In this document: positions 9,561 through 34,490 of the stretch, piece by piece
Numbering within the stretch: position 1 is the stretch's first letter
How the letters are laid out: each line of letters begins with the position of its first letter
Assembly: GCA_973895155.1 (NCBI GenBank)
Contig: OZ316899.1
Coordinates: forward strand, 10,877,135-10,941,134
From: Marsupella aquatica
Lineage: Eukaryota > Plantae > Marchantiophyta
Direction: 5' to 3'
Length of the DNA: 64,000 bases
The notes under the pieces: generated by a model
The model's input: only the letters and a program-made list of their open reading frames with translations
The model's database searches: none
Told to the model about the DNA's origin: nothing
Position numbers and translations under genes: made by a program

Positions 9561-9600
9561 TCATCCAATTGCCCCAAGGAATTCCCAGTATGGTCGCCAA

Positions 9601-10375: not shown

Positions 10376-11169
10376 ACGGCCATTGACACGAGCAGACCCG
10401 GACCGGCGGAGTGGCCGGTACACTGCAAGCGTGAAAGGCTTGGCCTATAAGCGACGAGGAGGCGTCGGGCGATCGACGAGCTTTCAGGGTGTAAAAAGGG
10501 GGCCGATCCTTTGCAGTGCACCAGTTCTTCAGTCCACGCGCTAGCTTCGACCCCAGTTCTCTTGCTTATCCTTAGTGGCCTTCTATCTCCTCTGAATATC
10601 GCACACAATCCTTTCCAATTCGGCCATACGATTCTGGACGCAGTTCCTGTCTATCGGAGGGCACTTGGCCGACTCATTAAAACACGCCAACCCATGCCGA
10701 TAAGAAATCAAACGCAAATACGAGAGAGTCATCCGCCTAGCAGGCCGCCACCACTATCTCCTTAACTTTGATTACCCGTCCCAGAGCAAGCTTTACCGAC
10801 CCGAAGAGATATCAGGGTACTTCTTTGACGAAGGCAAATATATTGGATTCTGGGAGGCACTGCTTTGGCTTTCGGACGAGGTCTTCAATATCCCGGGCAC
10901 GATTGACTTACAGCGGCACCACTTTGACTTGTCCCCGCTCGGGTCCGGGACATCATCAACAGTGAGTCCAACACTACCCAGTCTACAAGGGCGTCTACAC
11001 TTGCTTCAGAAAACCTCTACCGGCACCTGCAGAATTTCATGGCAACCGTACCATCGACCACTGATGCCAGCCTACCGTGCCCGTGCCCGCACCAGCACCA
11101 GCTTAGGCTCAGGCTCTGGCTCCGCCTCAGCCTAGCCAAACCCCGCCACCAGTCGCCCCGCCCATACAG

Positions 11170-13240: not shown

Positions 13241-13335
13241 GCTTAGAATAGAACTAGGAGTAGCTAAAACAGGCTGTTAGGACAAGCGCCGGCCAAAAGA
13301 TAGCGGCGCTGACACATTAGCCAACGTGTGTAGAA

Positions 13336-13776
13336 CTCGGGGGGGTCACTATATGAAGGGTCTCTTTACCGGGGTGCAAGCCAAGCACATTGACAAAGGA
13401 GAAGGGTACTGTAAACTGTGCAGTGGAACAGTAGAAACTATCCCCCATCTTTTCTCCCAATGTACTCATGCCAAGAGATGTTGGTCATTAGCTACAGCGT
13501 GTTTCGTAGGTACCTTTACTGATTATGCGGATCTCGGGGGGGTCACTATATGAAGGGTCATACATCACGTGCGACGATTGGGTCATTTATGACCCCCCTA
13601 AGTCACTTTCTAGAAAGTTGTACGGCACCAATCATGTGATGACACGTATGCATTTTGCAATTAAACAACCCTATATTTCCATAGAAGACTTAATAAGTCT
13701 TCCGCCAAAACCATTTAAATGGCCCTATACTTCGTCGCACATGATATGCCACTTCCATGGAAGTGACCCCCCCAAG
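13336..13776. mobile_element. Composite MITE with 8-bp TSD GTGTAGAA and a captured LINE zf-RVT fragment
   Basis: TIRs CTCGGGGGGGTCACT...AGTGACCCCCCCAAG. TSD at 13328-13335 and 13777-13784. Second left end at 13533. Peptide CKLC..ETIPHLFSQC..A..CW lies between the two left ends. Confidence 0.85.
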
Positions 13777-14566
13777 GTGTAGAATAGGTTAGACTAATAG
13801 GACAAGCCGTAACCAGCTTAGCAAGGATATAAGTCAGCGTAGATTCGGGCATGAGACCAGGCTGGTCCTCAGCCCTTAGTATTTAGCAGCCCCCTGGTAG
13901 AGGCAAGGGGGGGATTTTAGACTCAGAAATTGGCCATTCGCGGTACGCGTGGGGAGTCCCAAACTTGGTGAAGTACCGGAGTGCCAAGGGGAGGGTATAT
14001 GACTAAGCTCGCTGGCAAGTGCGGAGCCGGGCTCCGTTGTAACGTATACTCCTCGGTCTTGGGCCCGTTCGTTCACGAGGTGTCGGGTCAACCAATCGTA
14101 AGTGTATGATCATAAATGAATGAAATCCTTTCCCCTCAATTCCTTCATGTAAATCAAGATTTATGTTTATGTGTAAATGCATGTATGAGTCTTGTGTGCA
14201 AGTATCAATGTCGGGCCAAACACGTTATGCCAAGCATGCACGGGGTGCAGGTTACGGATACGGGGTTGCGAGCCGGGGTTGAGCACTTGTACTAATGGAT
14301 CCAGATCGAAGGCGGTAACACGAAGGCTTAGAAGTCAGTAAGCCGGGGTCGACCCCGTCTTGACTAAGGTACATTCCGGCGGCGGAACACAAACTATACC
14401 TAGGAGGTGTCTATACATAACAGTAAGCGCACTTAGCACTAGTTTACGTGAGTTAGGAGCATTCCGTGCGTCCCTCCCTGCCCGAACCCTCATATTTACG
14501 AACGATGTGCCTGTCTAAGCCAAAGCCTGGGTTAAGGCCTAGCTAGGCTGACGACGTGACACCAGT

Positions 14567-15898
14567 GCCAGAGGTAAGTGGCAAGGGGAAGGGGAAGGGA
14601 CCAGCTACCGAACCAGGAAAGAAGAAGAAGCAAAAACCTTATGGGTCAGGGAGTAACACGACTTCTCAAGCAGTCGTGACCACGGAGGAGAACCCAGCAC
14701 CAACCTTAGGCAGGCTCATGGTAGAGGATCCAACTGCCCTAGAAGGCGGGGATGGCAAAGCCGAGGCCAGGATACTCAGTGATGAAGCCGGGGTACCGGA
14801 TCCACCACTTGAGCATGTCGGGGAGGCCGTAGCCATATTAGAGGCCATGGCCAATGCTGAGGCCAAAGCCGAGAGTGGACCCGGTCAGGCCGCGGGTGAG
14901 TTGACTGGGTCTAGGGCAGGTAATCTGTCAGAAGACGGACCTATGGCAGTGGCTGTGGAGGAAGCGTTGGGGGCGTCCATTGAGGATCAGCCACCGCTAC
15001 CATGACGGTGGTAAAGGGCCGCTCCTTTTAAGGAGGGCGGACATGGAGGGAGGAGGCATGAGTGGGCAGGGCGGGCTCAGATCTCCAAGTTTAGAATTAC
15101 GATCAAGACCAAGAGGCGGCCTTGACACTTAGATTAGTGGGATTGCAGATCCATTGGTAAGAGCAACACTTGTGCTCTTGCCTCGTTGTACATAGGTAGA
15201 TTACAGATAGGATAGATTACGCTTACGCTGCAAGGAATTAGGCGGATCCACTGCCAGGATAAGTACCTGGGCAGCAGGGAGTTCAGGGCCTTCTTCCTTA
15301 GCAAGTTTTTAGTGCACCAGCAGGGCTGGGATCAAGTAGTAAAAGAAGCTCTCGGTTAGTTATATTGTGACCCTTGTGTATATTCATGTTTCCTCATGCC
15401 TAAGAGATGAATAGAGTTGGCCTCACGGCTTAGTTCGCAAATCTTGTGTATGAGAAGTACTGTTTGTATGCAAGTGCATGGTATAACTCAGTCAAAAGGA
15501 GTCATTTTGCTATTTGTGTGTCGCATTAACTTGTTTGAAGATTGCCCACATCAACCAAGAGAAGGGAGTAAGCAAGGTAGTAAGAGTTGGATGTGTCGAG
15601 TTGAGAGAGGTCTTAGCGGCTTACCCAAGCCAGTTGGGGATCATTTCGGCGGCGGAATCCAAACATACCTAAAGGAAGACCACGAGAGGAAGACAAGGGA
15701 AGGCATAGAATAGGCCGACTACGTATCTCATGACCCGATGAAGGATCTGTCTAGTATATGTGTGTAAAATGTTAGTAGAGAGTTAGCAGCGTCCCATGCT
15801 GCTAAGCCGCAAAACCGGCCTCACCGAGAGCGAAACCTGTGGGAATCGGCTTGTGTAGGGGGGTTTCTTGGGTTTAGGAAGCCATGGGACGCATCACA
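14567..15898 (+). mobile_element. 3' part of family C long LTR (end of coiled-coil ORF plus LTR end)
   Basis: Reverse-complement match to 44028-~45100. Ends GGGACGCATCACA. Confidence 0.85.
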
Positions 15899-17523
15899 TG
15901 TACTAGCTTTGTCCCACTTTGGGTGACTTAACGGCTCACTCAAACGGTAAGGCTAAGTGGCTCCCCTTAATGACTTAAGTCCCCTAATTTGGTAAAGTGG
16001 CACTAAACTTCACTTTGGGAGTGACTTTGGAGTGTTTGCCATCGTCATTGGACTTAGAATGTGAGGGGTCCAAGGTTTGGGGTTTTACATAGGGTTTTCC
16101 TATTTCGTGTTGCCCACTTTTGCCACCATTGCAAACTTCCCTTCTCTCGCGTAATGTGCTTGTTTTCTCTCAAGGAGCAGAGTTCACGCAATTGCAGTGA
16201 TCGCTCCTTGGGCTTGCAATCTACATTGTGAAGCTGCATTCTTGCTTGATCTGTTTAAGGACATTTAGGTTTTGGCTGGTAGGGCAAAGAAGGGCGTGGC
16301 TGCTGCAACCTTTGTGAGGAGCTGGTTGGAGTTTGAGGAGTCGGAGGTTGGGGTTTCTTCAAGGTGACGGATGACAGTCTTGGTTGTGGTCTTTTCCCTT
16401 TTGCTGCACCCACACCCAGCATTGGGAGGCCATGAGGATTGCTGGGAGGTCCTTCAGTTGTCAAGAGGTCATCAAGTTGAGTGCCTACCATTGTTGGCTG
16501 GAGAAGCGAATGGTTTTTGTGGAACGACGGTGATAGCTTGCGGATAGATTTTTCTGGCTAGTGATCGAAGCACTTGCATTTGGACCCACTCTTTTCCGTC
16601 CCACAACTTCGAAGAGCACGGAGGACTTTAGCTATGGCAGTATTCACTGTACCTCCTAACACGATTGCATTTGTTTTGCAGGCTACTCGTGCAGGAGCAA
16701 AAATTGGTACATAGTTGAAACCCTGTGACTACGACTAAGCCTTTTTCATTGTGGCTAAGACCTGTGACTAATTGTATATACACTATGATACATGTTCCCA
16801 ACAAGGAATTACAATAGAACTCGTAGGATTTGTAGAGTCCGCATGTGTGCTCACTATGTGGGTTGTTTGCATTGCTATACATAGGTCGGGTGTCCCAACG
16901 TGATCGACATCAGTTGCGGCTTAGTCCACCTCAAGTGCTTGCGGACTTCATGTAAGTTGGGCTGCTGTTGTAAGCAATTGGTGTTTGGTTGATTGATTAG
17001 TGGCTAGGCTTTTCAGTTCCGGACTTGGATTAGCTACGGTAGCTGCGGAATCATCATAATCTTTCCACACAAGCTCCTTGCTTTTGCACAATGTGGGAAT
17101 CCATATTTTCATAGTGCTTGCTCTTGCAAACTGGGAGCCAAGAGTTTGGAGTCGGGAGCTGAGAAGGGTATTGTTAGGCTTCAATTACTCTATATAAGTG
17201 ATTTCACTAATTCTGGAAATTCTTTTTTCCAAAGTGGCTTGGTAAAATTTCCAAATTAAATAAATACATTATCCAACAACCTTAAATGAAGTTTCCAAAA
17301 CTTGGAACTGGAATTTCTAGAACACTCTTTCAAGTTTCCTAAACACCAGTTGAAATTTCCAAATCCATGTCAAATACATTTTTGGCGTACAAATTTGGTG
17401 GAGAATAGTCACATGAGTAATGTCACATTTTCATTGTCACCCACTAACGGGAACCATACAGAAGTCCATATCAATTGTTTACTTGTAATAGGCCTCCCCT
17501 CAATGTTACAAGTCTCCAAATTT

Positions 17524-18591
17524 TTAAATAACGATCATTGAATGTGTGTTGCTACAAAACATATTTGAGCAAGTAAGTCTACTTCCTGACTTATCAACCT
17601 TTCTATCTCGGTTGCAAGCGTCTTTAGGATACAAGTTTTTAAACTTAGAAGTAAGGTCCCTAGTTTTTAGGACTTCCCAAACAAATTGCCGCTTATTTTG
17701 CAAATATGGGCCGGAATAACCATCTCCAAGTAGACCTTTAGCAATTGAATTGATGTCACGGTCACTCATATCTTGCACCGGTGGCAAACTTTGCACGGTA
17801 TGATTCACTTCCCAGGAAATCTTGTCTGCTGTGTGATCAAGGACAGTGAAATTATCGACGATGCCAGCAACACGGTGCCCCCAGGCTTGAGTGAGTCCTG
17901 CAAAGATATCACCATGCCTCCTTTGGGCTTCACCCTTATTGTAGGTGGACCATTTTGGGTAGTTAACATTCAGAAAGTGTCTTACATCAAAAGCATTGTG
18001 CATTCTTTGAAGAAGTGGAAGCAATATCTCCATCAAAAAAGTGTCGCCTCCCATTTTGTGAACAAATGGAACTGGAAACAATGTGTTAACATTTGGATTT
18101 GCAAAACACTTCAGAGGAGAGTCATCGATGAGAATAGTATTTGTCGGACCATATCTATTGCCAAAACAATCCCAAACAGTTTGGATTTCCTTGAGAAGTA
18201 TGTTTGCCTTCCCATCCATAATATCCGACCTCAAAAAGCCAGTGTCAAACGTTTCTTCTTGGGTGAATACAAACTTGAACTGCTTTTGTTCAACATTGTT
18301 GAAAACAAGATCCATCATTTCATTTGTTCTCGGCCTTCCCGCGCAAGTCCAAATCGTGACATCGTAATACCTGAAAATCACTTGTAAAAATTTGTGAAGT
18401 CCTAGACGCTCCACATACATAAATGTGTTCCCGCCCCGTCTTCCCCAGTGAACGTCCCTCATAGATGTGAGCCTCCGAAATGGTCCGGAGCTTTTACTCT
18501 TTACGGAATCAAAACAAACCTTATTAAGGTCAAAAATCAAGAGCTTTCGCTTGATCTCTGAGTGGAGTTTGGGAACAAACTCTGCAAACAT
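17524..18591 (-). CDS. FCP1/NIF-like HAD phosphatase domain, probably the C-terminal module of the cargo polyprotein
   Basis: LLIFDLN, ER.GLHKFL, VTIWTCA and NTILIDDSPLKC.ANP motifs in a 355-aa open frame. Confidence 0.85.
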   Translation of the reverse strand: MFAEFVPKLHSEIKRKLLIFDLNKVCFDSVKSKSSGPFRRLTSMRDVHWGRRGGNTFMYVERLGLHKFLQVIFRYYDVTIWTCAGRPRTNEMMDLVFNNVEQKQFKFVFTQEETFDTGFLRSDIMDGKANILLKEIQTVWDCFGNRYGPTNTILIDDSPLKCFANPNVNTLFPVPFVHKMGGDTFLMEILLPLLQRMHNAFDVRHFLNVNYPKWSTYNKGEAQRRHGDIFAGLTQAWGHRVAGIVDNFTVLDHTADKISWEVNHTVQSLPPVQDMSDRDINSIAKGLLGDGYSGPYLQNKRQFVWEVLKTRDLTSKFKNLYPKDACNRDRKVDKSGSRLTCSNMFCSNTHSMIVI

Positions 18592-18692
18592 AAAAATATT
18601 GAATCCGGATGGTTAGTCATTGGAACAGTCTTGACCAAAGACCATTTGAAGTCAAGTCAGTCCTTGAAATCAAATACCCCGTCTATCACCCT

Positions 18693-19916
18693 CTACACGC
18701 GTCTTGTGCAGAAATCACTGTATTGTGGAGGAAAGCTCAATCTATTCCTGAATAGACTTAAAATGAATTCTCTCCTCTCCAAATCTATGTCCTCTGCTGT
18801 GAAATCAAAAGGAAAGTCCAAACTATGGTAGTTCGCAAACTTCATAATGAACACACCACAATTATAGTAATCAGTTTGTCTTGGGATGTCCTTGGGACTA
18901 TGTTTTGGCCATAGAGTAGCTAAGACTTGCTTGTGACTTCTGCTTTGAATTTCATCCTTGACATATTTGGCTAAGTTTTCAAGAACCTCTGGCCTGTTGT
19001 TATGCAGAGAATCGAGATATTCTAAATACTTGTGTTCCATGTCAATCACAACTAACGCCCAATGATCGCCACCTTCGTGAATGGGGACAAATATTCGATG
19101 ACAATCAATTAAGAAATATTTCAGTCGTGAAGTCCAAGCCTCCACGGATCGGTAAGAGTAGCCATTCGACATCAGTGCAGTATAGAACCAAGTGTCAAAC
19201 ACATGGCACTTCAGAAGCTCCCTGTTGGAATGTTCATTCCTCTCCACTATGAGACTTAAGTAGGCATTTAGAATATCGGAACTTATCCAATTTCTAGGAC
19301 TCAGGCACCTCATCTGTCCATGAGTTATTAGGCACCCATTAGTCCTGACTAGAACCGCATCCTGATCCAACAGATCACTGAGGCAATTGTCAATCCTCGT
19401 TTTGTTATCCATTGGATCCGGAGACGGGAGAGGACATTTGTTTATGTTTAGAACTTTATGACTTGAGACAAGAGAGAGAAAATTGGCACCTGCCTCATTG
19501 GTTGCCTCCGCACGATCGACTCGCCTCTCTGACACCTCAGGAAGATTTGCTGTGAGAGAAAATGAGTTATCATTCTCTCCTATTACTTCAGTGCTACGAG
19601 AGTTAACATTGTCATCACATTGAAATTCAATCGGAGTGTGATCTTTTTCCACAATCCCAACCTCCTCCACAACAATCTCTTTTAAGGATCCACAATCCAC
19701 CACCCCCTTCTCGACATCCTCAAGTGTAGTTTTTGCCTCACAATCATAAAAAACTGGGCCACTTGGAAGAACTGAACCATCAACCAGAAGAGATTGCTCA
19801 ACACCTCTGTTGCACTCTAACCCTGGAGGGTCAAACAAATTTTGAGGATCTACACGATACGTGTGTAGGGAGACATCATCCACAACATCTTTCAGAGTTT
19901 CGTTGAACGCAATCAA
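18693..19916 (-). CDS. Ulp1/SENP (peptidase C48) SUMO protease domain with acidic linker
   Basis: WISSDILNAYL, VPIH...HWALVVID, YLDSL and PRQTDYYNCGVF. Catalytic H, D, Q and C are all present. Confidence 0.93.
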   Translation of the reverse strand: MIAFNETLKDVVDDVSLHTYRVDPQNLFDPPGLECNRGVEQSLLVDGSVLPSGPVFYDCEAKTTLEDVEKGVVDCGSLKEIVVEEVGIVEKDHTPIEFQCDDNVNSRSTEVIGENDNSFSLTANLPEVSERRVDRAEATNEAGANFLSLVSSHKVLNINKCPLPSPDPMDNKTRIDNCLSDLLDQDAVLVRTNGCLITHGQMRCLSPRNWISSDILNAYLSLIVERNEHSNRELLKCHVFDTWFYTALMSNGYSYRSVEAWTSRLKYFLIDCHRIFVPIHEGGDHWALVVIDMEHKYLEYLDSLHNNRPEVLENLAKYVKDEIQSRSHKQVLATLWPKHSPKDIPRQTDYYNCGVFIMKFANYHSLDFPFDFTAEDIDLERREFILSLFRNRLSFPPQYSDFCTRRV

Positions 19917-21010
19917 CCCGTGCCCGCCTGTAAGTTTTCAGAATTATCTGCCAAACCATACCCTCCTTTAGCCATTAGAAGAGGAAATCCTTCACGACTT
20001 GCAATTGGAACGACTGATGGACCAATTCTCATCTCCCCAATGGAACTTAGAAACTTTTCCTCCGCTTCCACCCCGGCGTAATGTAAAACTGTACCGGCAA
20101 TCTGATAATGCTGGCCCTCTTTTGCTCCACTAGCATTGGAGTTCTGAGTCGAACTCCCTTCAAGGCCAGGAGGTTTCCACAATGATTTGGCAAACTGTGC
20201 AACCGGAACTAACAATTTAAGATTCTCTGCATAAGCCGTGAGGTCAGAGACATCCTCACGGTCAGAGCAGAATGAAAAACACTCACGCTCAAGCATCAAT
20301 GCATTCTTCAGTACCTGCCCTCCTGTGAAAAAATCCAGGACAATTTCCTCCCTCAAAGAAAATGCATGAATAAAGCTCTATAGGATGCGACTGGGCTTAA
20401 TATTCAATGTGAATGGCCGTCCAGTCGTCAATTTGAAAGGAACAAGGCCTTCAAGTCGTGAGATCAATGTGTCCCTTTTTTTCTCTTGCATATCTTCCTT
20501 TTGAAATATTGGAATAATCCTCTCGACTTGGCTGGATTGTCTCCTCGAGGTCGGACTCCTCCAACACAAAGTGACCGGTAAAATCCTTGAAATGCTTTTC
20601 CCAATCAGGAACCCAATCTTGGGAGACGCCAAGGAAAAGAACCATGTCCGCATTGCCTCTCATGTGTTGCGAAGGAGCATTAACCAAAGAACTCCTCATG
20701 AACAAACCATATTCAAGGTGCGCATTATAGTTCTCCGGGAGATCTCGAACAGCTTCAATTATTCTTGCAAGAATAATACTAGGACGAACAAAAAAACAAC
20801 TGTTACCAGATCATTTGTTGGGATATTCACGACGATCTTCAAGAAGTTCAAGATTTTGGACTGCGTCCAAACCGGTTTTCCAATATGGGTCAAATCAACA
20901 ATCGCTAGAGATGCCAATATTGACTCCTTGCAGCTAGCCGAATCAAAAGGAGGATCAGCAGATGCGAGCAAATTTCCAGTATAGAAAACTCGGTAAGGAT
21001 CCATCCTTGC
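19913..21010 (-). pseudogene. Beta-class N4/N6 DNA methyltransferase-like domain, degenerate
   Basis: Reading through the TAG at 20378-20380 gives IKPSRIL*SFIHAFSLREEIVLDFFTGGQVLKNALMLERECFSF, resembling motif X-I-II (KP..L...I..FS..GD.VLDPF.GSG). Upstream is RVFYTGNLL..ADPPF..ASLAIVDLT. Confidence 0.62.
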
Positions 21011-24000
21011 GCGGAGATGGCCACCAAACCTCTTTTGGTGAATATTTCTCAACCTATTTTTCAGTGGCTCCGACATCTCTGCTTTTAATGACACCTTCAC
21101 AAGGCTCTTGAAATATCCAGTGTCCTCATCAGTGAAATCATATTGCTGAACTACATCACCCCAAGTTGATCCTTGCGAGAAAACCCCGTCGTACTTCTCC
21201 CGATAGAATTGAAGTATTGCCCCCTTAAGTTTGTCAGTATACTTTGCTTTTCTTGCCAATCCTGACATGGCGGGAAGATCAGTCAAAGCATGTTTCTTTT
21301 TCATCAAAAGCGCCTTTCCCAAATTCACTTTGTGGAGGATTTCCAAGATTTTGGATACTACGGCACCCTCAAAAACCCGGAATGTTGTCCCTGTCAACCG
21401 TTTTGCTTCTTTCAATTTTCGTGTCATTTGTCCGGTTGAATCCAAAAGATTACCCTTGAGCCAATTATTGCAAACCTCTCTCCATAAAGAGTAGAGCTTC
21501 TCTGGAGCAAACAAAATCCAATTGTACTCGCTGATGCTATTCACCTTTAACGTAACTTTTGCAAGTGTTTCATACTCCTGGGAGGAAAGACCAAACAACT
21601 TAAAGTTAGCCAGCTCATAGTTTCGAATCCCAAAATACTGGAAAGGCTCTACACGACTCTCGCGTAGAAAGGAGAGAAGGACAAACTGTCTGAATTTTGT
21701 TCACAACTCTCATGGAGAACCTACCTGAAATTCTGGAGATTTCCGACCCGATGGAAGTGGACGAGTTGGTCGCCCCATATCATTGTATTGCATTCTTGCA
21801 TGTTTCACTTGATCAATAAATGGAGATGAAAACCAATGTGCCTCCGCTTGAAGGTTGTTCGCATGTGAAATTTCCACAAGAACTTTCATCGGAGTTGACC
21901 CTTTGAGAATTTGCGCTCAACGATATCTGAGCAAATTGGCTGTTTGCATGAGAGATGGTTGGGTCTTTGAACTCCGGATAATTTCTTGGCGGCCATTGTG
22001 GAATGTTGACCACTGATGGCAAAGAACTTGAATTCCGCAAGCTTCTTGGTGTCAATATCCTTTCCCGCAAGGTCAATTAAACTTGGTACTCCGTCGATCA
22101 TCTTGTAAGGAACCAAATCTGCAGGTAAAGGTTCTTGCCCTGCATTTGTCATCATCAATTGCGCAAGATGGTTGACATGCTCCTCATTAAGGAGTCTTTC
22201 ATTCATCTTTGCAGGAGGGGGATGGATGTTTTCAACCGGGACAGAAAAAAATTTGGATATCCCGAAACAATACCAAGACTTATTCAACTCCAATGTTTTT
22301 TCTGCAGTCTCCAGACGAGCACGGTCGACAACTAGCTTCGCGGAACTAGGGTTCTTGTCAATATCCACAGCTTCTTGATTTTTCTTTGCTTTCTTGGGCT
22401 TGCGAACGACAGCTTGAGAGGTGATGACAACCTTCTTCTCAACGTTTGGGGCCTTCTTCTCCACGGCTCTGACCATGGGAGTTTTCACAACAATTTCAGC
22501 CGACTCTGTGGTCGTTCCCCTTCGCTTAGGAGGCTTTGCCCTTGATTCCACACCTACTGATTCAACTTCAAGTTTTGCTTTTTTCTTTCCTTTTGGTGAA
22601 GAATCTTTTATGACTCCCTTTCGCTTCAGCGTCCTGATCTCCGGTTCGACCTTTTCAACTTTCTTCCTGACCGACGCAGATTTTTGTCCAACCCGAGACT
22701 TTTGAGACGGTTTCTCCTCCTCAGGTTTTGTTGGTGAAGCAACTTTCTTTGCTTTGCTTGATTTTCGTATTTTGTCCTTGATTCCTTGCGCTTCCTCGAC
22801 AACTTGAATTCTCTTTCGAGAAGACGTTGCCTCTTCTTGTTTATCAATCGGAGATACGTTTTTCCACCTTTCACTTGAGGCACAACTTCGCACTGGTCAG
22901 AAACAAGAACTCTCTTTCGAGATGGTTTCTTGTCTTCTTTTTGTTCTTCCCGTTGAACCTTCTTGCGGCCTGTTTTTGCCGTAGGCGGCTCATCTGCTTG
23001 ATCAACGATCCTCACTCTCTTCCGAGGTAGTTTAGCTTCTTCTTTTGTTTTCTCAAAATCAACCTTCTTCGGGCCTAGTTTCCCTGATGGTGATTTTTTG
23101 TCCACTGCTTTTTTCTTCCAACTGGGTGTGGATGACTCTGACACGACACCAGCTTTCCCCTTCTTGGGCAAAACTCCCTTTGAAGTCTTTGCGTATCGCT
23201 TCTCTGTTGGAGGCTTTGTTGGGGGGATGACCTCATTTTGTTGAATTTCCCCACTCTCAACATCATCGTTGGTTGGTTCAACTCCACCTTCTAAACTTGT
23301 TGACTCTGACTCATTCTCTGACCCCGCCCGATTCTGAAAAGTCTTCTTGCTCTCTTCTTGGACACTTCCCTCCTCTCCGTCATCCTCATTTTTGGACTCA
23401 TAGACTGATATTGTTTCATGGGACTTTCTCTCTCCAGAGGCGGACGAGTCATCGTCGAAGGAGTCATCCTTGTCCTTTCCCTCCCCATCATCATCGTCAA
23501 TCTCTTTTCCACCAGCTTCTTTCTTCTTTGGGCGTACCAAGTCTTGGATTACTGGATGTCCTCGAATCCATTCCTCCACCTTTGTCTCAGTGAAGTGTTT
23601 CATGAACACAACATTCGGAGAAATAGTCATCTTTCTCCTCCAATCATCGTCTGGGATCTTCATCCGCATTATGTGATCCACCTCTTGTGTCTGAGAGATA
23701 AAATATTCCGACTACTTCATGACATAGGACACCCGTCCAAGCCCCATAATTATTTCATCAGCCGTAAAGACCCGATCAGGTGAGAGCCATCTATCCGCCA
23801 AAGGATCAAAGAAACCGCATGAGACAACATTTGTGTCCTGGTTGTAAGGTTCAAGACAATGTGCTGAGAAAAACCCATGAAGTGGAGCAACCATCTGCTT
23901 GAAATTCCAAGAACTCTCAGACTCCAATGTCAGCAGAAGAGATGGGTTGTCCTTTGGGGACGCAAATCTCGTACAGTCTGCGAGAGTGCCAAAACTCACA

Positions 24001-24176
24001 AAGTTTCTTCGTCCATTTTCTATTTTAACTCCCCTCACAATCAAACGGTAGTTGCCTTTGACTGGTTGCAATTCAAAAGACCATGAATTCAGTCGCCAAA
24101 ATATTCTCAAGTTTTGCGACCGTTGGAGTTTCAATCCGAAGCCTATCAAAACGGAAATAAACAGAGCAAACTCCTA
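21010..24176 (-). pseudogene. N-terminal part of cargo gene: acidic/basic linker, ParB/Srx-like domain and helical region; intron 21638-21724
   Basis: NERLLNEEHVNHLAQLM..EPLPA..FFAISGQHSTMAAK resembles the ParB GxxR box. The GT-AG intron joins SPEFQ|YFGIRN in frame with 20759..21598. Several frameshifts. Confidence 0.6.
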
Positions 24177-25387
24177 GAAGACAAGGAGAAATATGTCAAA
24201 CATCTACACGACACTCGCGTAGAAAACAAAGTGAGCCGACAAACTGTTGATTCATTATAAACAAAATGATGTGAAAACATCCTTTACAAAATGGCCTCTT
24301 TGGCGTGTAAACGGTCCCGCAAAAGATGACTATTAGAACTTTGGAGATAGTCTTATGAGCCATTTGAGCTCATCATGATTTGGAGTCAAGACATTGTCCA
24401 GATTTAAGAAAACAATCCGATCCGATAGAAACATAAGAGAACCCTAACTCAAAGTATGCGCACACATGTGGCCATGAAGGCAACAATTTATTTTTTCCAA
24501 TTCAATCCATCGCACTTTGGTATCCAATTGTCTTTCCCTCTCTCGGCCATCGGCCAGTTCCTGTTGCAAGTCATGAACTTGATGATCTCAGAACTTCTCC
24601 ATCTCAAGAGAAGCTTTCATGGACTTTGCCGCTACGTCGCAAGTAGTCAAATGCTGGATCTGTGCCCATCGATACTTTGCAAACATCTGCTCCTGCTCGT
24701 ATTCTATTGCTTCCTTTTCATCCTCCAACGCTTTTTGGAGAATGGAATTCTCCATCAAACTCATATCAAAAGCATAAATACTTTTTTGTAACAATCCCTC
24801 AATCTTCTCAAAATCGTCCTTGCGATGAGCGCCTTTCTCTAGAAAAGTTGAACAAACAAAGTCACATGAACAATGTTTTGATTCCATATGGTACTATCTC
24901 CGAACGAGGATTCTACACGACAGTCGCGTAGAAAACCTGAGTTTCTACACGATAGTCGTGTAAAAATCCATTATCTTCCAAGATTGGAGAAACGGTTCCA
25001 CGCAAGACTCGCGTAGAACTAAACAGGAAATTCTAAATTCTGACATAAGGGCTCTCAAATAGAGATTATGGGTCAATGAAAGAGACCCATTCTACATGAC
25101 TCTCGTGTAGAGCAGACTCAAGTTTAGTACAATCCATAGAAAACAGAGAAATGTAGGTCAGAATTACCTTTGAGCTTCCTCAATGCATCCAGAGCAAGTA
25201 ATCCGGCGTCATTTTCTACCAAAGAAGTCGTCATTCCCTTCGCACGTGCAAACTCCTCCATGACAATGTCAAGGACCGACGAGTTGAGCAAAAACAAATA
25301 GAAAACACAAATGATCCAAGGCCCGAGGTCCAAGGTCCTTTTATAGTCCGAGACGAGCGTGAAAGAGCGTATCGTCCGAGGCGAGTG

Positions 25388-25545
25388 TGAAAGAGCGTGA
25401 AACAATCTGAGGGCCAAGCATGAAAGAGCGTGAAACAATCTGAGGGCCAAGCGTGAGAGAGAGAGAGAGAGCAAGAGAGAAAGAGAGAGAACGAGAGAGA
25501 AAGAGAGAGAGAGCGCGTGATTGAGAGAGAAAGAGAATGAGAGCG
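25388..25545. repeat. ~33-bp tandem duplication followed by an imperfect (GA)n tract
   Basis: GAAAGAGCGTGAAACAATCTGAGGGCCAAGC twice, then a GAGAGA run. Confidence 0.85.
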
Positions 25546-26448
25546 GCAGCGAGCTGGAAAGCAACATATACCCCTTCTGGGTGGAATACTGTCAAACAAT
25601 GATTGCGGTTGCTACCCGGCTGCCAAACCTGACACTCGGGATCTGGTGGAGGACGTGTCACTAACATGGCGAACCACCGCCCGCCACCAAACCAATCTGC
25701 ATTTATGGAAACGGCTGCTCACCACACACCATGCCGCCACAAAATTCTACCAGGTATTATGGGTTTAGAGTGATCGTAATAATAATGCCTGAAATGAGTA
25801 GTCGAGAGCATTTAGGTACTAGGGAAAATCTGAGAGTTTGCGTAGGCCTATTCCTGTCGAATGTGCTTCGTGCAGGACACGAGGTAAGGGCTTCGTGAAT
25901 AGATCAGCGTGATTGTCTTTAGAAGGTATCCATTGAACGTTAATCTGATCGCCGTGCTGTTCATGTGTATGGAAGAATTTAGGTGCTATGTGCTTAATTC
26001 GATCTCCCTTGATAAATCCTTTAGCAATTTGGTCAACGCAGGGTCTGTTATCTTCGTAGATGATTGTTGGTTTGGTGAGGACTTCTTGACCGGTGGAGAT
26101 CTTGTATGGTTATAGTTCATACACCAACAACACAAGGATAATCTTTTCATGAGCCAATGTGGCTTATAAGGTGTTACACATTGGATGGTTATAACTACCT
26201 TCTCCTAGTCTCATGACTCTCTATATCTAGTCCCTATATACCCCTTTGTATCACTCTATGAGTTAGGGTTAAGTGTATTCTAACACATTCAACTTTTTAG
26301 ATGACTGTCTTCATTTCTTGTTTAAACTGGATTTGAATTTTCAGTTCTGTGATATTTGCTTACATTAGAGTTAGAGATTTTCACATGAGCCTCGTGTAGG
26401 ATGTTTTAAAAGATGTTTTTGTTGCAAATGTTTTTCCTCAGATCCAAA

Positions 26449-29400
26449 ATGGCTTCAAGAACGCAGCTTCTACCTGGAGAAGTCGTTCACCTGCTTATCA
26501 ATGAACAACTAGTTGCTGGTGGAAAGGTTTTTTGTGTTCTACCTTCCAACACCTGCCACTCTGTGTTGCTTGGAGCAGAACGGATAAGTGTGGCGGTATA
26601 CAATGCTTTCTTTCACCTCGCACAACTACCGTATCCACATCCGGGAGCTGATCTAGTAGGAGAGTCGGTGAACTCCGTTGTTTTGTGGGATCGGCAAGAT
26701 GTCCGCCATGCAAATGACATGAATCTTGGAGGTCAAACTTAGTCAACTTATGTCATTGATGACCCAGACAATATTCAAGGTAATTCTGAATCAGCCACCG
26801 GACTGGAGGGGACAGAGGTTTTTGCGGAGGATCTGAAAGATCGTAGCACATGGTTCAAAAAGTTTGCCCTTCTCTATGCCGACAATGGAGAAACCTTGCT
26901 CGCAAGAGGTTGCATCATAAACCCACATCCTCTCGCGTCCATTAACAATGAGCGAGTTGGGGAAGATCATGTCGGTGTGAATATTTTGAGTCTAGCTATT
27001 GAAGCTGGCTTGGGAAAAGTTTTGTTCCTCAATTTGTTGATGGATCACCATGCACAGTTCGATGGCCAATCAACAAAACTAGGATTGAGCCTGGAATGGA
27101 ATGTTTGAGTGATCTTTTAGATCAGAACGATGGTAACAATGAGGGAGTTAGAATTCTCTCATATATCAAGCCAAAAAGGGGCTATAACAATCAACGAAGA
27201 AATCCTCAAGATTCAAACCAGAAGGAGAGAAAATGACTCAAGAAAAGACGCAATCAAAAGATGTCTCGGGTGTCCATAGATACTCTTTATCGGGTTGATT
27301 GTTGCTCACAGAGTTGTTATCGATGACAACTCCGTGAGACCGTCACTGACATTAGGGAAGAGTACTATGGTCTATCTCATGTTGAGCAACATACTTACAT
27401 GCTCAATCATCTTCACTGTTGTGACAATGAAACCATCGCCTCAGGCATGATTGTATTCAAGGGAAGCAGGATTTGCAAAGAAGCTTTCTGGAATATTCGT
27501 GGATTTTCTCAAGGAACATTTTACACAATGTATTCACGATACATGGAGGGGGAAAAAGTTGGTGTTCATGGGAATGAAGGGACCATCAAGACCAAAGACT
27601 ACGTTGTGTTGTTCATAGAATCAATTCAAAGTATCCTGTAGAAATGTGCTGAACCAATGCCACATCTTCACAAAATTGGTGTTTCAGGCAAGCAGGAAGT
27701 TGTTTTCAGGGTTCCAATAAGTTTTGGGAGAAAAGATGTTTTTGAAGAGGCTTGCGAGCTTAACAAAAACCTGGGTATTCACTTGCCCTCTCTCCCAACC
27801 TTCTACAAGCTTTTGGATAAATATTTCCCCAATTTCCAATTCCAAGATCGGAGCAACTTTGCAAAATGCGATCTCTGCACGACCATTAAAGAAACACTTC
27901 GGGGGGAGAAACGGGTGGATAAGATTTTAGAAATCAAGGCAAAGCGCGAACGGCATATGTTGGAACAACAATCACGTAGGAGTATGTACTATGCAGCAAA
28001 ACTTGCGGCGGACCAAGAGCCCGACAAATATTTGTCTGTGATTCACGATAAAATGGATCAAGCCAAGACCGGAATCCCTAAAATGACTTCTACACTCAAG
28101 AGCCAAGGAGGCAAATCAACCTTGCTACCAATGATGCTGATGGGGATGTTAACGCATGGACGGGAGCCTGGAATTTATGCACATTTTGCCCTTTCTGGTT
28201 TGTGGGCAAGCGATCCTGATTTTACAATCTCTTCGCTTGCAAAGTTATTTCGTGATCTTGAATCATTTGTAGGAGATAAGACCGGCAATCTAGCTCTCAA
28301 CACCTCTGACGTCATAGATCCAATCTTTGTATCCCTCTTGGATAGGCGTGCCTTTGAGGTAGGATACCTCGAAACCAAAAAGATCTCTCTCGCTCACTTC
28401 GCAGGGCTTGGTGATAATGTGCCACACGAGAGTCACGTAGAGCCTTCAACATCGCTACCCTTCAAGGCGCTTCCTCAACACCTCCACCTTCAACTTGATA
28501 ACTTGGGAAAGGATAACAAGAACCAAACACTTCTGGCTTTCTGTAGCGACCTTGTTCTAAGAGGAGTGTTTGAGTCAGTAACTCTTTCTTTTTTGCTGGT
28601 GGGGCACACTCATGAGGATGTGGATGCATTCTTCTCTAGAGTCGGGATAAGGATCTACAATCAAGAGCTTACCACATTTTTTGGTTTGATGGCGGAGGTT
28701 TGGGAGTGCGAGAAGAAACATCTGGTTCCCAGGTTCATCCGCGAAGTTGCATCTTACAAAGCTTATGTAGGACCATTTGTCAAAAGGATCCAGGGTCAAT
28801 CAGCACCTGTTCAATTCTTGTTCTCAATGAAGGAGAATGTCCCAGTCTACCAATATTGAGAGAAAGTTGATACGCCTTGGCTACCGACAAAGGGTCAAAC
28901 AATTTGGTTGTTTGACTTAGAGAGAAACCAATACAAATTTCCAATTGGAAGTCCTTATTCCAAGCGGATGGAGTCTTCTCACAAGCAGGCGAATGACATT
29001 TTGGAATACTTGATTCATTATATCTCATGGCTGAAGACTGCATGGAAGGATGTTACATTGGAGGGATATCGTCTCCGAAGTCCAGAGATTCAATACTGGG
29101 AAAGCATTGTTTCTATGTTTCAGGACACACTTTGCTCTCCTTCGCTAGCAGGGGTAGATTATCCATTACTTGATGGATTCTGGCCTCGAACAAACCATGG
29201 AACTGGGTATCGTCAGGATGGTCAGAACGTGGATACCAACCCAAGCGAAGACAATGGGGTGATGCATAAACTGGAAAGAGAGCTTTCAAGAAGATGAAGA
29301 ACAAAGGCAAACAATCTTTGTCGGACACCCTTCTCAGCGTGAGAGGTCAAGATTTACTCCTCTAGAAGATATTAAAAAGAATATATTTGTTATTATTCGA

Positions 29401-29757
29401 CCCATCGATGAATTTGAAACCAGAATTCCGCAACGATTTTGGCTTGCAAAAGCAATCGATTGTGTCATAAGAGATCCCGACAATGCGCATGTTGGAGAGT
29501 TCCAAGTTGAATGGTGGCGCCCTCTTAATCGCAAGAGTTTTGCAACCAAATCAGAAAGATATCAGGACTGCTTTAATTCAAAGCAAACGTGGGAAAGGGA
29601 TCCCAATTACCTCATTCCCCCAATCACGAATGATTGGATCCTAGCAACTTCAACCATCACCGGATGGACATCAAAAGCAAAAGCAAAGGTAAAAGTTCCA
29701 GCGAGAGTTTTGGAAAGTGTGAAGGTTTACATTACAAAAACGATTGAGGAGAACTAA
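26449..29757 (+). pseudogene. Sola/DUF7869-type DDD transposase with N-terminal Tnp1/En-Spm-like domains
   Basis: ICKEAFWNIRG, AKCDLC, HDKMDQ, LQLDNLGKDNKN and FLLVGHTHEDVDAFFS. Core 27657..28859 is open; the flanks carry stops and frameshifts. Confidence 0.8.
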
Positions 29758-29837
29758 AATCCTTTTTCGATGCGAGACTCGCGTGGAAAACACTTGGTGA
29801 TGCACGGCACGTCCTAATTGTCAAGTTCAGGATTGTG

Positions 29838-32800
29838 TGTCACATCGTCAGCCTTGGCCTTACTCCGGGCTTCGGCTTAAATAGGCACATCCTTTGTCAA
29901 AATGAGGGTTCGGGTAGGGAGGGAGGCACAGAATGCACCCAACTTACATAAAATAGCGCTAAGTGCGCCTATCATCATATACGGACACCTCCTAGGTATG
30001 ATTTGTGTTCCGCCGCCGGAACGTACCTCAATCGATAGCAGGATTGACCCTGGCTTAAGGGCTTCTAAGCCTTCGTATTGTCCGCCTTCGATCCGGATTT
30101 TGGTGGTATGGGTGCTCAACCTGGGCTCGCAACCACGTACACGCAAGCTGCACCCCGTGCACTACTTGGGTAGTGCGTTCGGCCAAGCGTTGGCACCTAT
30201 ACACAAGATTCACACACATACATACGCACAAGCATAAAATCTTGATTTATACAAAGGAAATAACGGGAAGGGATTTTACTCCATAAGAGACATATGCGTA
30301 CACTTAGTTGACCCGAATGCTCTGGAGTGAACAGGTCCGAGGCCGAGGGTGTACACTACAACGGAGCCCGGCTCCGCACTCGCCCAGCAAGCTTAGTCTT
30401 ACACCCTCCCCTTGGCACCCTTCCACTCCCAGAGGTCGGGACTCCCCGCACATACCGCAGATGTCCAATACTGAGACTAAAAACCCCCTGCCTCTACCGA
30501 GGGGTGCACTAAATACTAAGGGCCGAGGAACGGAGTGTCCTCCCGCCCAAAGATTCGCTGACTTAGTTCCTAACTAATCTGACTGTCAGGCCAAAAAACG
30601 GCTGTGTCTTATTAGAAGATCCTAACCTACGCAGGCTGGACAGCATGGCGGTGCTGCTCTAACTAGGGCAGGTTCCTATCCCCATAGCCTGATTTAGCTA
30701 TTCCTAACCCTATTCTATTCCTACTCCGCCACTAATGCCTGGCACGCTTGCCAGAGCCGCCCGGGTGGGAGCGGCCATCCCACTGCTTACGAAGTCTGTC
30801 GTTGTCCGCCTTGAGGAGCTGGACCTGGTCTAGCAGAGATTTGTTCTCTCGCTTCGCCGCGTCCGTCTCCTCCGCTGCCTCCTGGCATGCCTCCTCCAGC
30901 TGCTGGACGTTGCTCGTCAGCTTGCCCGCCATCTGGTCCGGCTTCTTGGCTTCGGTTTGGAGCCGCACCACTTCGGCCTGTAGCGTGGCTATCTCCGCAG
31001 TGTCCCGCTGGGCCCGTTCTTCGGCCTCCTCCAGGTCTTTCTGCCAGATGACAGTTTGATTCTCGTGTCGTGCAATCTCGGCCTCGTTCCCAGCTTTGGC
31101 CTGTTCGGCTAGGGCGGTAAGGGCGTGCGCCTTCGCTAACAACTCATCGGCGGTTGCAACTTTGGGTCGTAGTTGCAGAAGCTCAGCCTCTTGAGCCGCA
31201 ACTTTGTTCTTTAAGTATACGGACTCCACCCGGTACCGCTCTATCCTCTGAAGGGCCTCTAACTGGGCCCAACCTGCCTTTACTGCGGCAACCAACTCCT
31301 GATTGAAGAAACAAGCTACCTTCTGGGCCATGAACTCCCCGGTATCCCGAGCAATTTGATGAGAGAAATCTCCTAGAAGCCCGTTCAAAAATGTACCCGG
31401 TACGAAGAGTTCCGGGTGGTCCAGGTTGTGCCTATCCGGAGTTGGGCACGGGCAGACGTCAACACGCGCGGGGGCTGGGGCAGTGACATCCAGCCCTGGG
31501 GACGTAGTGTTGGAAGGGGTTGGAGTGTCCTCCTGCAACAATGTCCGGTTCTCCAGAATAGCCACTGATGGGTCTTTGGGAGACCCGGGCTCGAGTAAGG
31601 CCTCCGCTGTACCGACTTCTGTACTTGGCCCGGCCTGTTGGATCGCATCTATGGTTGCAATTACCGACCCATCCGGTACCTCCTCGGTCATGACTATAGC
31701 TACTTGTGGAGGTGGGGTGGGTGAAGCCTGTGTGTCCGCTGGACTTCGGGCCTCGGGTTGGGGCCGTCTCTCCAAGGCCGGGAAAACCCACCTAGCTGGG
31801 ACCAGCTTTGTAACGTTGACACGAGGAAGGGTTCCTCGATCAAACCGAGCGTACCACTCGAGAATGATCTCGATGTGGCTAGCGAAATACGCCTTCCCGC
31901 CAATGTATAGCGTCTTTCTTCGCCGCTCCATCTCTTCATGGAATTTCTTAGCAAAGTACGATGCCCACTTCCTAGGTCGATAGTTCTCGACCTGGATAAC
32001 CTGGGCCGCGGAGATCTCCCCCCGGGGTTCCATCATGTGGAGGGCGTACCTTTGGAACTCCAGTCGCTCAGCTATCTCGGGGATGAGGCAGGTCCTCATC
32101 ACGAACCCGTTGTCCACTGCTCGCTCTGAGGGAAAACTTGAGGATTGGTACTTGGCTCCCTTGCCCTCGGGAGCCCGTGATTCGACTCGGTGGTCACCTT
32201 CGGGTAACCCGAAGATTATCTTGAGCCGTTCTTCCGTGAGGGACATATTCCTTCCCCGCAGCCGAGTATGTTGACGTGCATCATCATAATTCTTGACGAA
32301 TTCCGTCATGTCCTTCTTGTAGTACCTGCAAGTGTTCCAGGGGAGAGAGGCGAGGTGCTCAAATCCCTGAGTCTTCAGGTACACCGCATGTTTGGGATGG
32401 AGGATGTTTTTATGCACGTTTTCCCCCATGCGGTGCATTGTCACCTTGGCCGCGGCTACCGTGGCCAATGGTAACCCGGATGCAGCGGTGGGTTCCTTCC
32501 TCTTCTTCCCCCGTGATTGGCTCGGGGAGGGTGACACCTCCCCATCCTCTCGATCGGGCATAGGTAGTGCTACCGCCGTTAGTATTGGGCCCGGGGCGGC
32601 CACGGTCACCGTGTTGTCTGCTGGAGCCACTCCTTGGGTCCGAGCATGGGGAGGGGACGATGTAGTGTCGTCCCCCTGAGTGTTTGCTCCTCTGGGCCGC
32701 CTGAGCAAGGGTGGGGTAGCCTCGTCGTCGTCGCTAAGGTCCACAGCGTTGATGACGGAGCGTACTTGTACTGGCGGGCGATCGGCGGTGGGGGTTGGCT

Positions 32801-33818
32801 AGGCTGAGGCTGAGACTGAGACTGAAGCTGAGCCTGAGTCTGCGTTGGTGCGGGTAAGGGTATGGGGTCGACTGGGCCGGCGCAGGCGGTTGAGGGTCTA
32901 GTTCCCATGAAGCTCTGCAGGTGCTGGTAGAAGTTCTCCGAAGCAAGTGCAGATGGCCTTGTCGAACGGGTAGTGTTGGACTCACTGTTGATGATAGCCC
33001 AAACCTGAGCAGGGATGTGGTCAAAGTGATGTCGTTGCAAGTCGATCGTACCCGGGATATTGAAGACCTCGTCCGGAAGCCGAAGCAATGCTTCCCAGAA
33101 ACCGATATATTTGTCTCCGTTGAAGAAGTACCCGGATACCTCTGCTGGTCGGTAAAGCTCGCTCTGAGACGGGTAATCAAAGTTAAGGATATATTGGTGT
33201 CGTCCTGCTAGGCGGATGGCTCTCTCGTACTCGCGTTTGATTTCGTATCGGCGCGGGTTGGTGTGTTTCAATGAGTCGGCCAAGTGTCTTTTGGTAGATA
33301 GGAATTGCGTCCAGAATTGAATGGCCGAGCTGGAGAGGATCGTGTGCGACATTCAGAGGAGATAGCAGTGGCGACTAAGAGAGAATGAGAGAGTTGGGGT
33401 CGAAGCTGGCACGTGGACTGATGGACTGGTGCACTACAAAGGGTCGGCTCCCTTTTTATACCTTGAGGGCTTGTCGATCACCCGACGTCTCCTCGTTGCC
33501 TATAGGCTGAACCGTTCATGCTTGTAGTGTACTGGCCACTCCGCCGGTCTGAGTCAGCACGTGTCAGTGGCCGCTTCCCTAAGTTTGTTATACGGACCCG
33601 ATGGAGGGGCCCCTCCACGCTCGCAACCCGGGCGTGCGAATGGTGACACGCCGCCAGTCCGAACATGAATTCCCCTTATTGACTAATGATTTCCTACTCA
33701 TAATGGTTACCTAAATACTGTCATTATGCTAATAATAGCGGCCTAAGATACCCCTAACGCGCGTGCTAAGCGCGGTCCAGACTGAATTACTCATACTTGC
33801 CGTACCGGCGACGTCACA
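29838..33818 (-). repeat. 3' LTR of gypsy family B (3981 bp)
   Basis: Minus strand reads TGTGAC...TGACA. It directly follows PPT AGTAGGGAGCTA and an integrase, and matches the solo LTR 2725-14561. Confidence 0.88.
30732..32744 (-). CDS. LTR-embedded ORF: Athila extra-ORF/Transposase_32-like segment plus C-terminal coiled coil
   Basis: 670-aa open frame with EFVKNYD..LRGRNMSLT...IIFGLP and a long heptad C-terminus. Upstream frame 32606..33352 is probably a frameshifted N-terminus. Confidence 0.7.
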   Translation of the reverse strand: MDLSDDDEATPPLLRRPRGANTQGDDTTSSPPHARTQGVAPADNTVTVAAPGPILTAVALPMPDREDGEVSPSPSQSRGKKRKEPTAASGLPLATVAAAKVTMHRMGENVHKNILHPKHAVYLKTQGFEHLASLPWNTCRYYKKDMTEFVKNYDDARQHTRLRGRNMSLTEERLKIIFGLPEGDHRVESRAPEGKGAKYQSSSFPSERAVDNGFVMRTCLIPEIAERLEFQRYALHMMEPRGEISAAQVIQVENYRPRKWASYFAKKFHEEMERRRKTLYIGGKAYFASHIEIILEWYARFDRGTLPRVNVTKLVPARWVFPALERRPQPEARSPADTQASPTPPPQVAIVMTEEVPDGSVIATIDAIQQAGPSTEVGTAEALLEPGSPKDPSVAILENRTLLQEDTPTPSNTTSPGLDVTAPAPARVDVCPCPTPDRHNLDHPELFVPGTFLNGLLGDFSHQIARDTGEFMAQKVACFFNQELVAAVKAGWAQLEALQRIERYRVESVYLKNKVAAQEAELLQLRPKVATADELLAKAHALTALAEQAKAGNEAEIARHENQTVIWQKDLEEAEERAQRDTAEIATLQAEVVRLQTEAKKPDQMAGKLTSNVQQLEEACQEAAEETDAAKRENKSLLDQVQLLKADNDRLRKQWDGRSHPGGSGKRARH

Positions 33819-34490
33819 TAGCTCCCTACTTAACTGTGAAGCGTCCTCGCGAACATCACTTTCGGCGTTGTCATCTTGATGGTGGTACTTCTTTACACGA
33901 TCGTAACTGACTCGCGTGGGGAGTAAATCGCCGGCGTACGTTGCAAGCTCCAAAGATCCGTTGGGGTAGATCTGATTGACTAGGAAGGGCCCTAACCAAC
34001 GGGTATGAAGCTTCCCTGGAAACTGCATGTACCTACTATCGTACAGAAGGACCAGATCGCCTGTCACGACATCGACCTTCCGTAGTCCTTTGTCGCGCTG
34101 CTTCTTAAAAGTTGCTTGCTGGTGTACGGCGTGTCGAGATGCTAGTAGCCGTGCCTCTTCTAAGGCTTCAATCTGATAAGCTCGGTCTGACAAACTTTCA
34201 GGTTTGGGCAAGCGATCCCAAATGCTGACCCGTGGAGTGTGTACTTCAAACTCGACGGGCACCAACAAATGTTGGCCGAACATGAGAAAGTACGGGCTGT
34301 GACTCGTAGTAGTTTTGTAAGCTAGATTATACGAGTACACCGCTGCGTACAACTTATTATCCCAATCCGTTTTGTGCACAGCTACAGTTTTGTTGAGGAT
34401 CTTCCTAATGATACCATTGGCTCTCTCTACCATCCCTTTGGCTTTAGGATGATACGGGGTAGTCTAGCGGTGCTTGACTAGGTAACGCTC
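33729..34490 (-). pseudogene. gypsy B integrase C-terminal fragment, 5'-truncated
   Basis: TTPYHPK, VERAN and GKLHTRWLGPF. The frame reads through the PPT into the LTR. Confidence 0.9.

Follow-up and report, generated by a model that had tools for sequence, protein, structure and literature searches.

In a 64,000-nucleotide stretch of DNA from the liverwort Marsupella aquatica (assembly GCA_973895155.1, contig OZ316899.1, positions 10,877,135 to 10,941,134 of the forward strand; the whole stretch is called the window, and positions are counted from its first nucleotide), we found a region that is probably a dead copy of a large cut-and-paste DNA transposon of liverworts. The element would contain three transcription units: a plus-strand transposase, a divergently transcribed accessory protein of about 1,700 amino acids (aa), and a downstream NIF/FCP1-like gene. 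The accessory protein, as we reconstruct it, would consist of an N-terminal domain, a lysine/glutamate (K/E)-rich linker, a domain with the ParB/sulfiredoxin (Srx) fold, a helical region and a methyltransferase-derived domain, followed in the subfamily represented in the window by an acidic linker and a Ulp1 protease. A preliminary description of the region, made from the sequence, had reported a broken minus-strand coding run of about 6.6 kb facing a transposase, and this arrangement was confirmed, each of its features being found where it had been placed: pieces of open reading frame (ORF) run from 24149 down to 17524 on the minus strand, opposite the plus-strand transposase. All window ORF pieces were searched separately, without joining or repairing them. 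The features that define the element and its mobility are as follows.

17191 to 17222, no strand: candidate left terminus and terminal inverted repeat (TIR), ATAAGTGATTTCACTAATTCTGGAA from 17194.
26413 to 29757, plus strand: pseudogene of a DUF7869 (Sola-like) transposase; Pfam DUF7869 at 5.2e-38 in 27657-28859.
29837 to 34700 (right edge approximate), no strand: nested insertion foreign to the element, recognised by self-BLAST of the window and from the sequence.
34740 to 34999, no strand: candidate right subterminal region and terminus, with a core TIR that matches the left end at 19 of 20 positions.

The head-to-head DDD transposase of the preliminary description is a DUF7869 protein, oriented divergently to the cargo. 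It is colinear over all five of its pieces with the copies at two loci of the liverwort Calypogeia fissa (L003 and L005), each at 50% aa identity. Set against the near-continuous transposase of L003, the window copy is broken by in-frame stops at 27639-27641 and 28857-28859 and by a frameshift near 29270-29335. No mention of DUF7869 was found in the literature. The transposase ends in a conserved domain of about 140 aa (FWLAKA...VEWWRP; window 29335-29757, L003 1755-2201) that belongs to no Pfam family, and the segment just before it has a faint MSL3_chromo-like match (E 0.055).

The element spans approximately 17194-34999; once a nested insertion of about 4.9 kb is subtracted, it measures about 12.9 kb. 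The 20-nucleotide core of the left terminus matches the reverse complement of 34974-34993 at 19 of 20 positions, the left terminus is similar to the TIRs found at L003, L004 and L001 of C. fissa, and AT-rich TTTCCAAA-type motifs are common to both ends. A candidate target-site duplication (TSD) of the window element agrees at only 3 of 4 positions (CTAT/GTAT). The near-intact copy at L003, an element of 13.9 kb, has TIRs that agree at 27 of 29 positions (1264-1292 and 15153-15181) and a 4-bp TSD, ATAA; Sola elements reportedly have TSDs of 4 bp (Bao et al. 2009). The insertion lies between the transposase stop (29757) and the right end, and consists of a 4-kb repeat resembling a long terminal repeat (LTR), at 29837-33818, and an integrase-like fragment. 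We rejected the 4-kb inverted arms (10377-14562 and 29837-33573) as giant TIRs because the right one sits within the element, past the transposase but short of the true right terminus, and the integrase fragment comes after it. A TIR-like match at 43102 was also discarded as a chance match inside a copia-type integrase.

The minus-strand run contains the following features, in the order of transcription.

22351 to 24149, minus strand: K/E-rich linker in two overlapping frames, with an N-terminal exon at 23712-24149, from the ORFs.
21710 to 22350, minus strand: ParB/Srx-fold domain with the box FFAISGQHST, from the alignment with relatives; its C-terminal helices are in a shifted frame (21710-21889).
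20759 to 21598, minus strand: helical region and N-terminal half of the methyltransferase-like domain, from phmmer relatives and alignment A3.
19913 to 20705, minus strand: C-terminal half of the domain resembling beta-class amino-methyltransferases, with an HPTxKP-like box and motif I VLDFFTGG, from profile A3.
18693 to 19916, minus strand: acidic linker of about 200 aa and Ulp1/C48 protease in one uninterrupted 407-aa ORF; Pfam Peptidase_C48 at 1.7e-30.
17524 to 18591, minus strand: NIF/FCP1-like gene of the haloacid dehalogenase type, an intact 355-aa ORF with its own ATG; Pfam NIF at 1.6e-15.

A phmmer search of 1.84 billion representative sequences with the 279-aa piece at 20759-21598 returned 49 relatives, the best at 8e-36. 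The named ones came from the liverworts C. fissa and Riccia sorocarpa, and a later search added the lycophyte Diphasiastrum complanatum. Two full-length, transcript-like members, P0052 (1009 aa) and P0055 (1219 aa), have a lysine/serine-rich N-terminus, an FxAISGQHS box, a helical region, a methyltransferase-like domain, an acidic linker and a small C-terminal domain (HYVW...EYGSF). With tblastn of the window pieces we compared four loci of C. fissa (L001, L003, L004, L005) and one of D. complanatum (L006, CM055109.1); a further locus, L002, came from Riccia. At L001 and L005 a minus-strand transposase faces, on the plus strand, the ParB-like domain, the helical and methyltransferase-like parts, Ulp1 and NIF; L003 and L004 keep this order but lack Ulp1, with the small C-terminal domain in its place. 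The lycophyte locus contains two decayed pairs of a ParB-like (+ methyltransferase) gene and NIF, at 2141-5094 and 10001-12506, with VDGQHT as the ParB box, and the module thus reaches vascular plants. The linkage of these domains to the transposase within one element, proposed from the window, was upheld: their order is found again in three to four C. fissa loci and partly in the lycophyte. The domain calls themselves (ParB-like, beta-class amino-methyltransferase-like, Ulp1, NIF/FCP1-like) were correct. Because the loci have 30-50% aa identity to the window, they represent a conserved architecture rather than duplicates of a single locus. The stops and frameshifts reported earlier in the coding run are present and, judged by comparison with the near-intact L003, the breaks are true mutations and not introns alone.

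These comparisons also bear on the idea that the cargo is host-gene debris, captured passively as in Pack-type elements and of no use to the transposon. Capture of Ulp1 is common in plant transposons, and the window copy is a pseudogene. However, the order of several genes has been kept at 30-50% aa identity across subfamilies, genera and a lycophyte. The ratio of nonsynonymous to synonymous substitution rates (dN/dS) between L003 and L004 lies between 0.12 and 0.45: 0.12 for the ParB-like domain, 0.45 for the helical and methyltransferase-like part and 0.31 for NIF. Every relative locus that we examined lies in such an element, although a separate copy in the host, outside transposons, was not searched for. 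We regard passive capture as scarcely credible.

The ParB-like domain is recognised by its fold. We modelled the C. fissa homologue (L004:9869-10468) with AlphaFold2 from an alignment of 29 sequences, which included the window piece and was obtained after adding 25 domain fragments. The model has a predicted local distance difference test score (pLDDT) of 82, whereas an earlier model from 6 sequences had reached 38 and was unusable. With few exceptions the top Foldseek matches were ParB, Noc, Srx, PadC, KorB and SbnI (best E 1.6e-3, probability 1.00). VIA-align superposed the model on residues 37-132 of Myxococcus ParB with a Z score of 10.3 and a root mean square deviation of 2.1 Å over 95 residues, and found 21 chains at Z of at least 8. 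The predicted fold of the FFAISGQHST domain is therefore that of ParB/Srx. By sequence, no ParB match was obtained in Pfam, NCBIfam or a PDB profile search (profiles A1 and A5), and the sole trace is a faint ParB-like PHROG match (E 0.099). The ParB call of the preliminary description was thus upheld by AlphaFold2 and Foldseek and not by Pfam; the box lies inside a conserved domain that takes this fold in the L004 homologue. Upstream, the N-terminal piece resembles L005:8748-9230 by eye, and lysine-rich linkers occur also in L003, L005 and P0055.

The methyltransferase-like part of the window copy carries two frameshifts and at least one nonsense codon, and neither it nor the ParB-like piece, taken alone, has a Pfam match. 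A profile of 18 family members (A3), when compared with the PDB, gave a match at 4.5e-6 to M.RsrI, a beta-class N6-adenine methylase. It spans VNPxxKP...VLDFFSGGQVLK..REC, equivalent to HPTQKP...VLDFFAGSG of M.RsrI, and the HPTxKP box and motif I stand C-terminally, in the order of the beta class. Through the family profile, the segment KPSRIL*SF..VLDFFTGG of the window aligns to the HPTxKP and motif I region of M.RsrI. N6_N4_Mtase was the top Pfam match in 8 relatives and the sole match in 7 of them (1e-6 to 1e-3); P0057 alone exceeded the gathering cut-off, with 29.2 bits, and the seven others scored 2.6e-5 to 9.7e-4. As a lead from a low-confidence model, the Atlas structure neighbours of P0001 (residues ~204-520) were all N6_N4_Mtase clusters, two of them phage ParB_N fusions.

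The catalytic motif IV, (D/N/S)PP(Y/F/W), is absent from all 15 relatives that cover the site. In its position, after a hydrophobic strand, all relatives have an Asp, which precedes F[SAGT]R (LAIVDFSRR), and the window copy reads LAIVDLTH. A DPPF in the window (~20960, 15 residues upstream) was rejected as motif IV because its column is variable, with DPPQ, KPEV and IPNL in relatives. A non-canonical but active methylase with which the element marks its own DNA, as proposed for algal proteins and published for Ectocarpus (PMC12477816), would be consistent with the conservation of the fold and of the C-terminal half that binds S-adenosylmethionine, with the invariant Asp at the catalytic position and with dN/dS below 1. 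Against such an enzyme stand the family-wide loss of motif IV, a motif I that reads FFSGG and not FxGxG with both glycines in register, and the N-terminal catalytic half, over which no Pfam match was found in the relatives. We consider an active methylase quite unlikely; the domain is most likely methyltransferase-derived and not a base methylase. The preliminary description had placed motifs X and I at KPSRIL* and allowed for a methyl writer: the beta-class domain is real, whereas a writer is unlikely because the catalytic DPPY has been replaced throughout the family.

A second, strongly diverged family with a ParB-like part (box FDGNHR) and a methyltransferase-like part occurs elsewhere in the window, at 56552-57174 and 59060-62587. 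Its two copies are 65% identical in DNA, the piece at 59060-59605 matches N6_N4_Mtase at E 0.006, and BLAST detected no similarity between this family and the one studied here.

The Ulp1 protease of the preliminary description, with its intact triad, stood up to the Pfam search. The catalytic set is kept, with H in DHWALV, D in YLDSL, and Q and C in RQTDYYNCG; the same is true of L005, and Ulp1 occupies the same position in L001 and L005. Linker and protease lie in one uninterrupted ORF, which shares 4 nt with the preceding methyltransferase-like ORF in a different frame; Ulp1 is thus probably fused to the C-terminus of the ParB-methyltransferase-like protein, as a feature of this subfamily. 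An EAGAN motif in the linker was considered as proof of the fusion and was dropped as not significant.

The NIF gene scores 57.6 bits against a Pfam cut-off of 21.8 and has 45-50% aa identity to the L003 and L004 copies. Motif IV, IDDSP, is retained. Motif I reads DxNx instead of DxDxT in each copy that was read: DLNKV in the window, DLNKI in L003 and L004, DMNHV in L001 and DLNHV in L005. The second Asp of the DxDxT motif of SCP/FCP phosphatases is the general acid, and its replacement by Asn should slow turnover or prevent it. Of the FCP1-like phosphatase proposed earlier, then, the domain was confirmed and the catalytic motif was not.

The preliminary description had also joined ParB, methyltransferase, Ulp1 and NIF in a single multidomain protein. 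All four lie tightly packed on one strand, in the same order in three loci, and a cag acceptor-like site is found just inside the start of the NIF ORF. However, the Ulp1 ORF is closed by a TAG stop, and reading revealed no in-frame pairing of splice donor and acceptor; both in the window and in L005 NIF has a start of its own (ATG or GTG), the ATG of the window lying 100 nt downstream of the Ulp1 ORF. The annotated 818-aa ParB-methyltransferase gene of L003 ends 1 kb short of NIF, the two being separated by a palindrome array, and the transcript-derived P0052 and P0055 end without a NIF domain. One giant polypeptide is therefore very unlikely. Because of the Ulp1 stop, the ATG of NIF and the end of the L003 gene, NIF is, as judged from the ORFs, a separate downstream gene.

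The element also carries palindromes, two groups of which are positioned as follows.

24203 to 26400, no strand: divergent intergenic region with 5 of the 10 palindrome copies (TCTACACGAnnnTCGTGTAGA, up to 4 mismatches), from the window palindrome scan.
21648 to 21668, no strand: palindrome copy in the gap that separates the ParB exon from the helical exon and is probably an intron, from the palindrome scan and the equivalent gap of L003.

At up to 3 mismatches the TCTACACGAnnnTCGTGTAGA palindrome occurs 7 times in the window, where 0.01 copies are expected, and all copies lie within the element; at up to 4 mismatches the element has ten. Upstream of NIF, one copy coincides with the Ulp1 stop. 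The palindrome, 19-21 bp long, differs from subfamily to subfamily but occupies the same positions, namely the divergent promoter region, the gap after the ParB exon and the region upstream of NIF. L003 and L004 share GCCTCGAGAnnnTCTCGAGGC, with at least 15 copies at equivalent positions (6490-8450, 10172-10242 and 13051-13420 in L003), and Riccia L002 has a third type, CCTCACGCnnnnGCGTGAGG, at 504-12973. The C. fissa and Riccia palindromes are partly arranged in tandem arrays of 35 and 70 bp. This pattern fits co-evolution of a protein with its sites, although it does not by itself identify the binding partner.

Considering these data together, we propose that the ParB-like protein would recognise its own element through the palindromes and, as a DNA-bound scaffold without methylase activity, might bring the deSUMOylase to the chromatin of the element. 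The NIF-like protein may act on, or trap, a phosphoprotein such as the carboxy-terminal domain (CTD) of RNA polymerase II. The outcome would be regulated transcription of the element or a countering of host silencing. In its most specific form the proposal describes a self-addressed anti-silencing module: the dead ParB-methyltransferase protein would read its own palindromes and tether the SUMO protease while the DxNx NIF protein acts on or traps the phosphorylated CTD, and the element would stay transcribed despite heterochromatin. This form we offer tentatively and consider doubtful.

Several observations weigh against the proposal or parts of it. The structural match covers the ParB N-domain and stops short of the ParB helix-turn-helix of the parS-binding type, and the arginines of the GERRxRA box, which serve cytidine triphosphate binding, are replaced by (S/D)GQH(S/T). 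The palindromes could be sites for the transposase. The EAGAN linker motif is common to relatives that lack Ulp1 and reaches only E 0.65, and in L005 a gap of 355 nt and a change of frame separate the linker ORF from Ulp1. The transposase is only putatively a Sola-like DDD/E enzyme, its family match being to Pfam DUF7869. The anti-silencing function itself is purely inferred.

An alternative that draws on the same observations is that the palindromes are binding sites of the transposase, or other sites acting in cis, and that the ParB-like domain is a nucleotide-binding or nuclease-type module in transposition, for instance in transpososome assembly or copy-number control. Internal transposase sites are frequent in transposons, palindrome copies are also found in coding sequence and near one end, and the limitation of the structural match to the ParB N-domain suits such a role. 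On the other hand, the palindromes are concentrated in the middle of the element, at the divergent promoter, and upstream of NIF, not at both termini, and the terminal 500 bp of L003 contain none. The replaced GERRxRA arginines also count against this alternative, and the Ulp1 and NIF partners point to roles in protein modification. We judge it unlikely, and continue to read the palindromes as candidate sites of the ParB-like protein.

The surroundings of the element are rich in other repeats. The inverted copy of the 4-kb repeat, at 2725-2979 and 10377-14562, is an unrelated neighbour about 83% identical to the copy at 29837-33818. It is split by a 7.4-kb LTR retrotransposon whose LTRs (2979-3755 and 9598-10375) are 93% identical. 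The right copy contains an intact 670-aa coiled-coil ORF (30732-32744, minus strand) that belongs to no Pfam family. A segment of 1.07 kb occurs at 14843-15899 and, inverted and 90% identical, at 44027-45096, where it adjoins a Gypsy-type integrase (45212-46354); it belongs to the nested retrotransposons that surround the element.

The interest of this family is threefold. First, ParB-methyltransferase genes of eukaryotic transposons have so far been mentioned briefly and in algae only; the family extends the module to liverworts, with related genes in a lycophyte, and has conserved partners, Ulp1 in one subfamily and the NIF-like gene always. Second, two of the three 'enzymes' have altered catalytic motifs and yet evolve under constraint, and the palindromes change between subfamilies while keeping their positions. 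Third, the family offers a testable case of transposon proteins that may recognise the DNA encoding them and manipulate the chromatin or transcription of the host, and a natural system in which to follow the joint change of ParB-like domains and their sites in eukaryotes. As a side possibility, the liverwort sperm N4-methylcytosine methylase DN4MT1 and the transposon domain might share a beta-class ancestor that entered through such elements.

Comparison with known systems places the module in a wider context. Phage and bacterial fusions of ParB_N and N6_N4_Mtase (PF02195 and PF01555) agree with the family in the order of the domains and of the beta-class motifs. They keep DPPY and measure about 400 aa, whereas members of the eukaryotic family are extended by a long helical insert, by linkers and by additional domains; a tblastn search with P0052 of phage and plasmid collections gave no match. 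Among plant transposons, KI-MULEs and CACTA elements carry Ulp1. Zisupton or Ginger elements with Ulp1 have been described as well (PMC2836005). These elements share with ours a C48 protease with an intact catalytic set in a DNA transposon, but their Ulp1 stands alone or is fused to the transposase, and not to a ParB-methyltransferase-like protein. In the red alga Bostrychia moritziana, the Plavaka proteins PAG2 and PAG3 have an N-terminal ParB-like domain and adjacent inverted-repeat arrays, and self-binding has been proposed (bioRxiv 10.1101/2025.02.11.637652). An accessory protein that begins with a ParB-like domain, beside inverted-repeat arrays, is common to both systems. The Bostrychia elements differ in that the transposase is Plavaka/CACTA-like, ParB is fused to a 2-oxoglutarate (2OG) oxygenase, and the N6-adenine methylase is part of a separate SET-domain protein.

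The closest parallel is Sola1-1_Ec32 of Ectocarpus, a 21.5-kb Sola1 transposon with an accessory gene on the opposite strand that encodes a 1104-aa protein with ParB-like and N4-cytosine/N6-adenine methyltransferase domains; proteins similar to it have been published for green and red algae (PMC12477816). The preliminary description had not recognised this architecture from any described plant transposon. It is in part described, a ParB-methyltransferase gene opposite a Sola1 transposase being published; the literature yielded no land-plant example of this kind of cargo and none combined with Ulp1 or NIF. Both are giant cut-and-paste elements for which binding and modification of the element itself can be envisaged, the likeness of the proteins being one of described domains. 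The liverwort element differs in its land-plant host, in the family-wide loss of DPPY, in the Ulp1 added in one subfamily and in the NIF/FCP1-like gene as a constant partner; all four features appear to be new. By analogy, the liverwort element is the land-plant counterpart of the algal ParB-methyltransferase accessory genes of Sola1 and other giant transposons.

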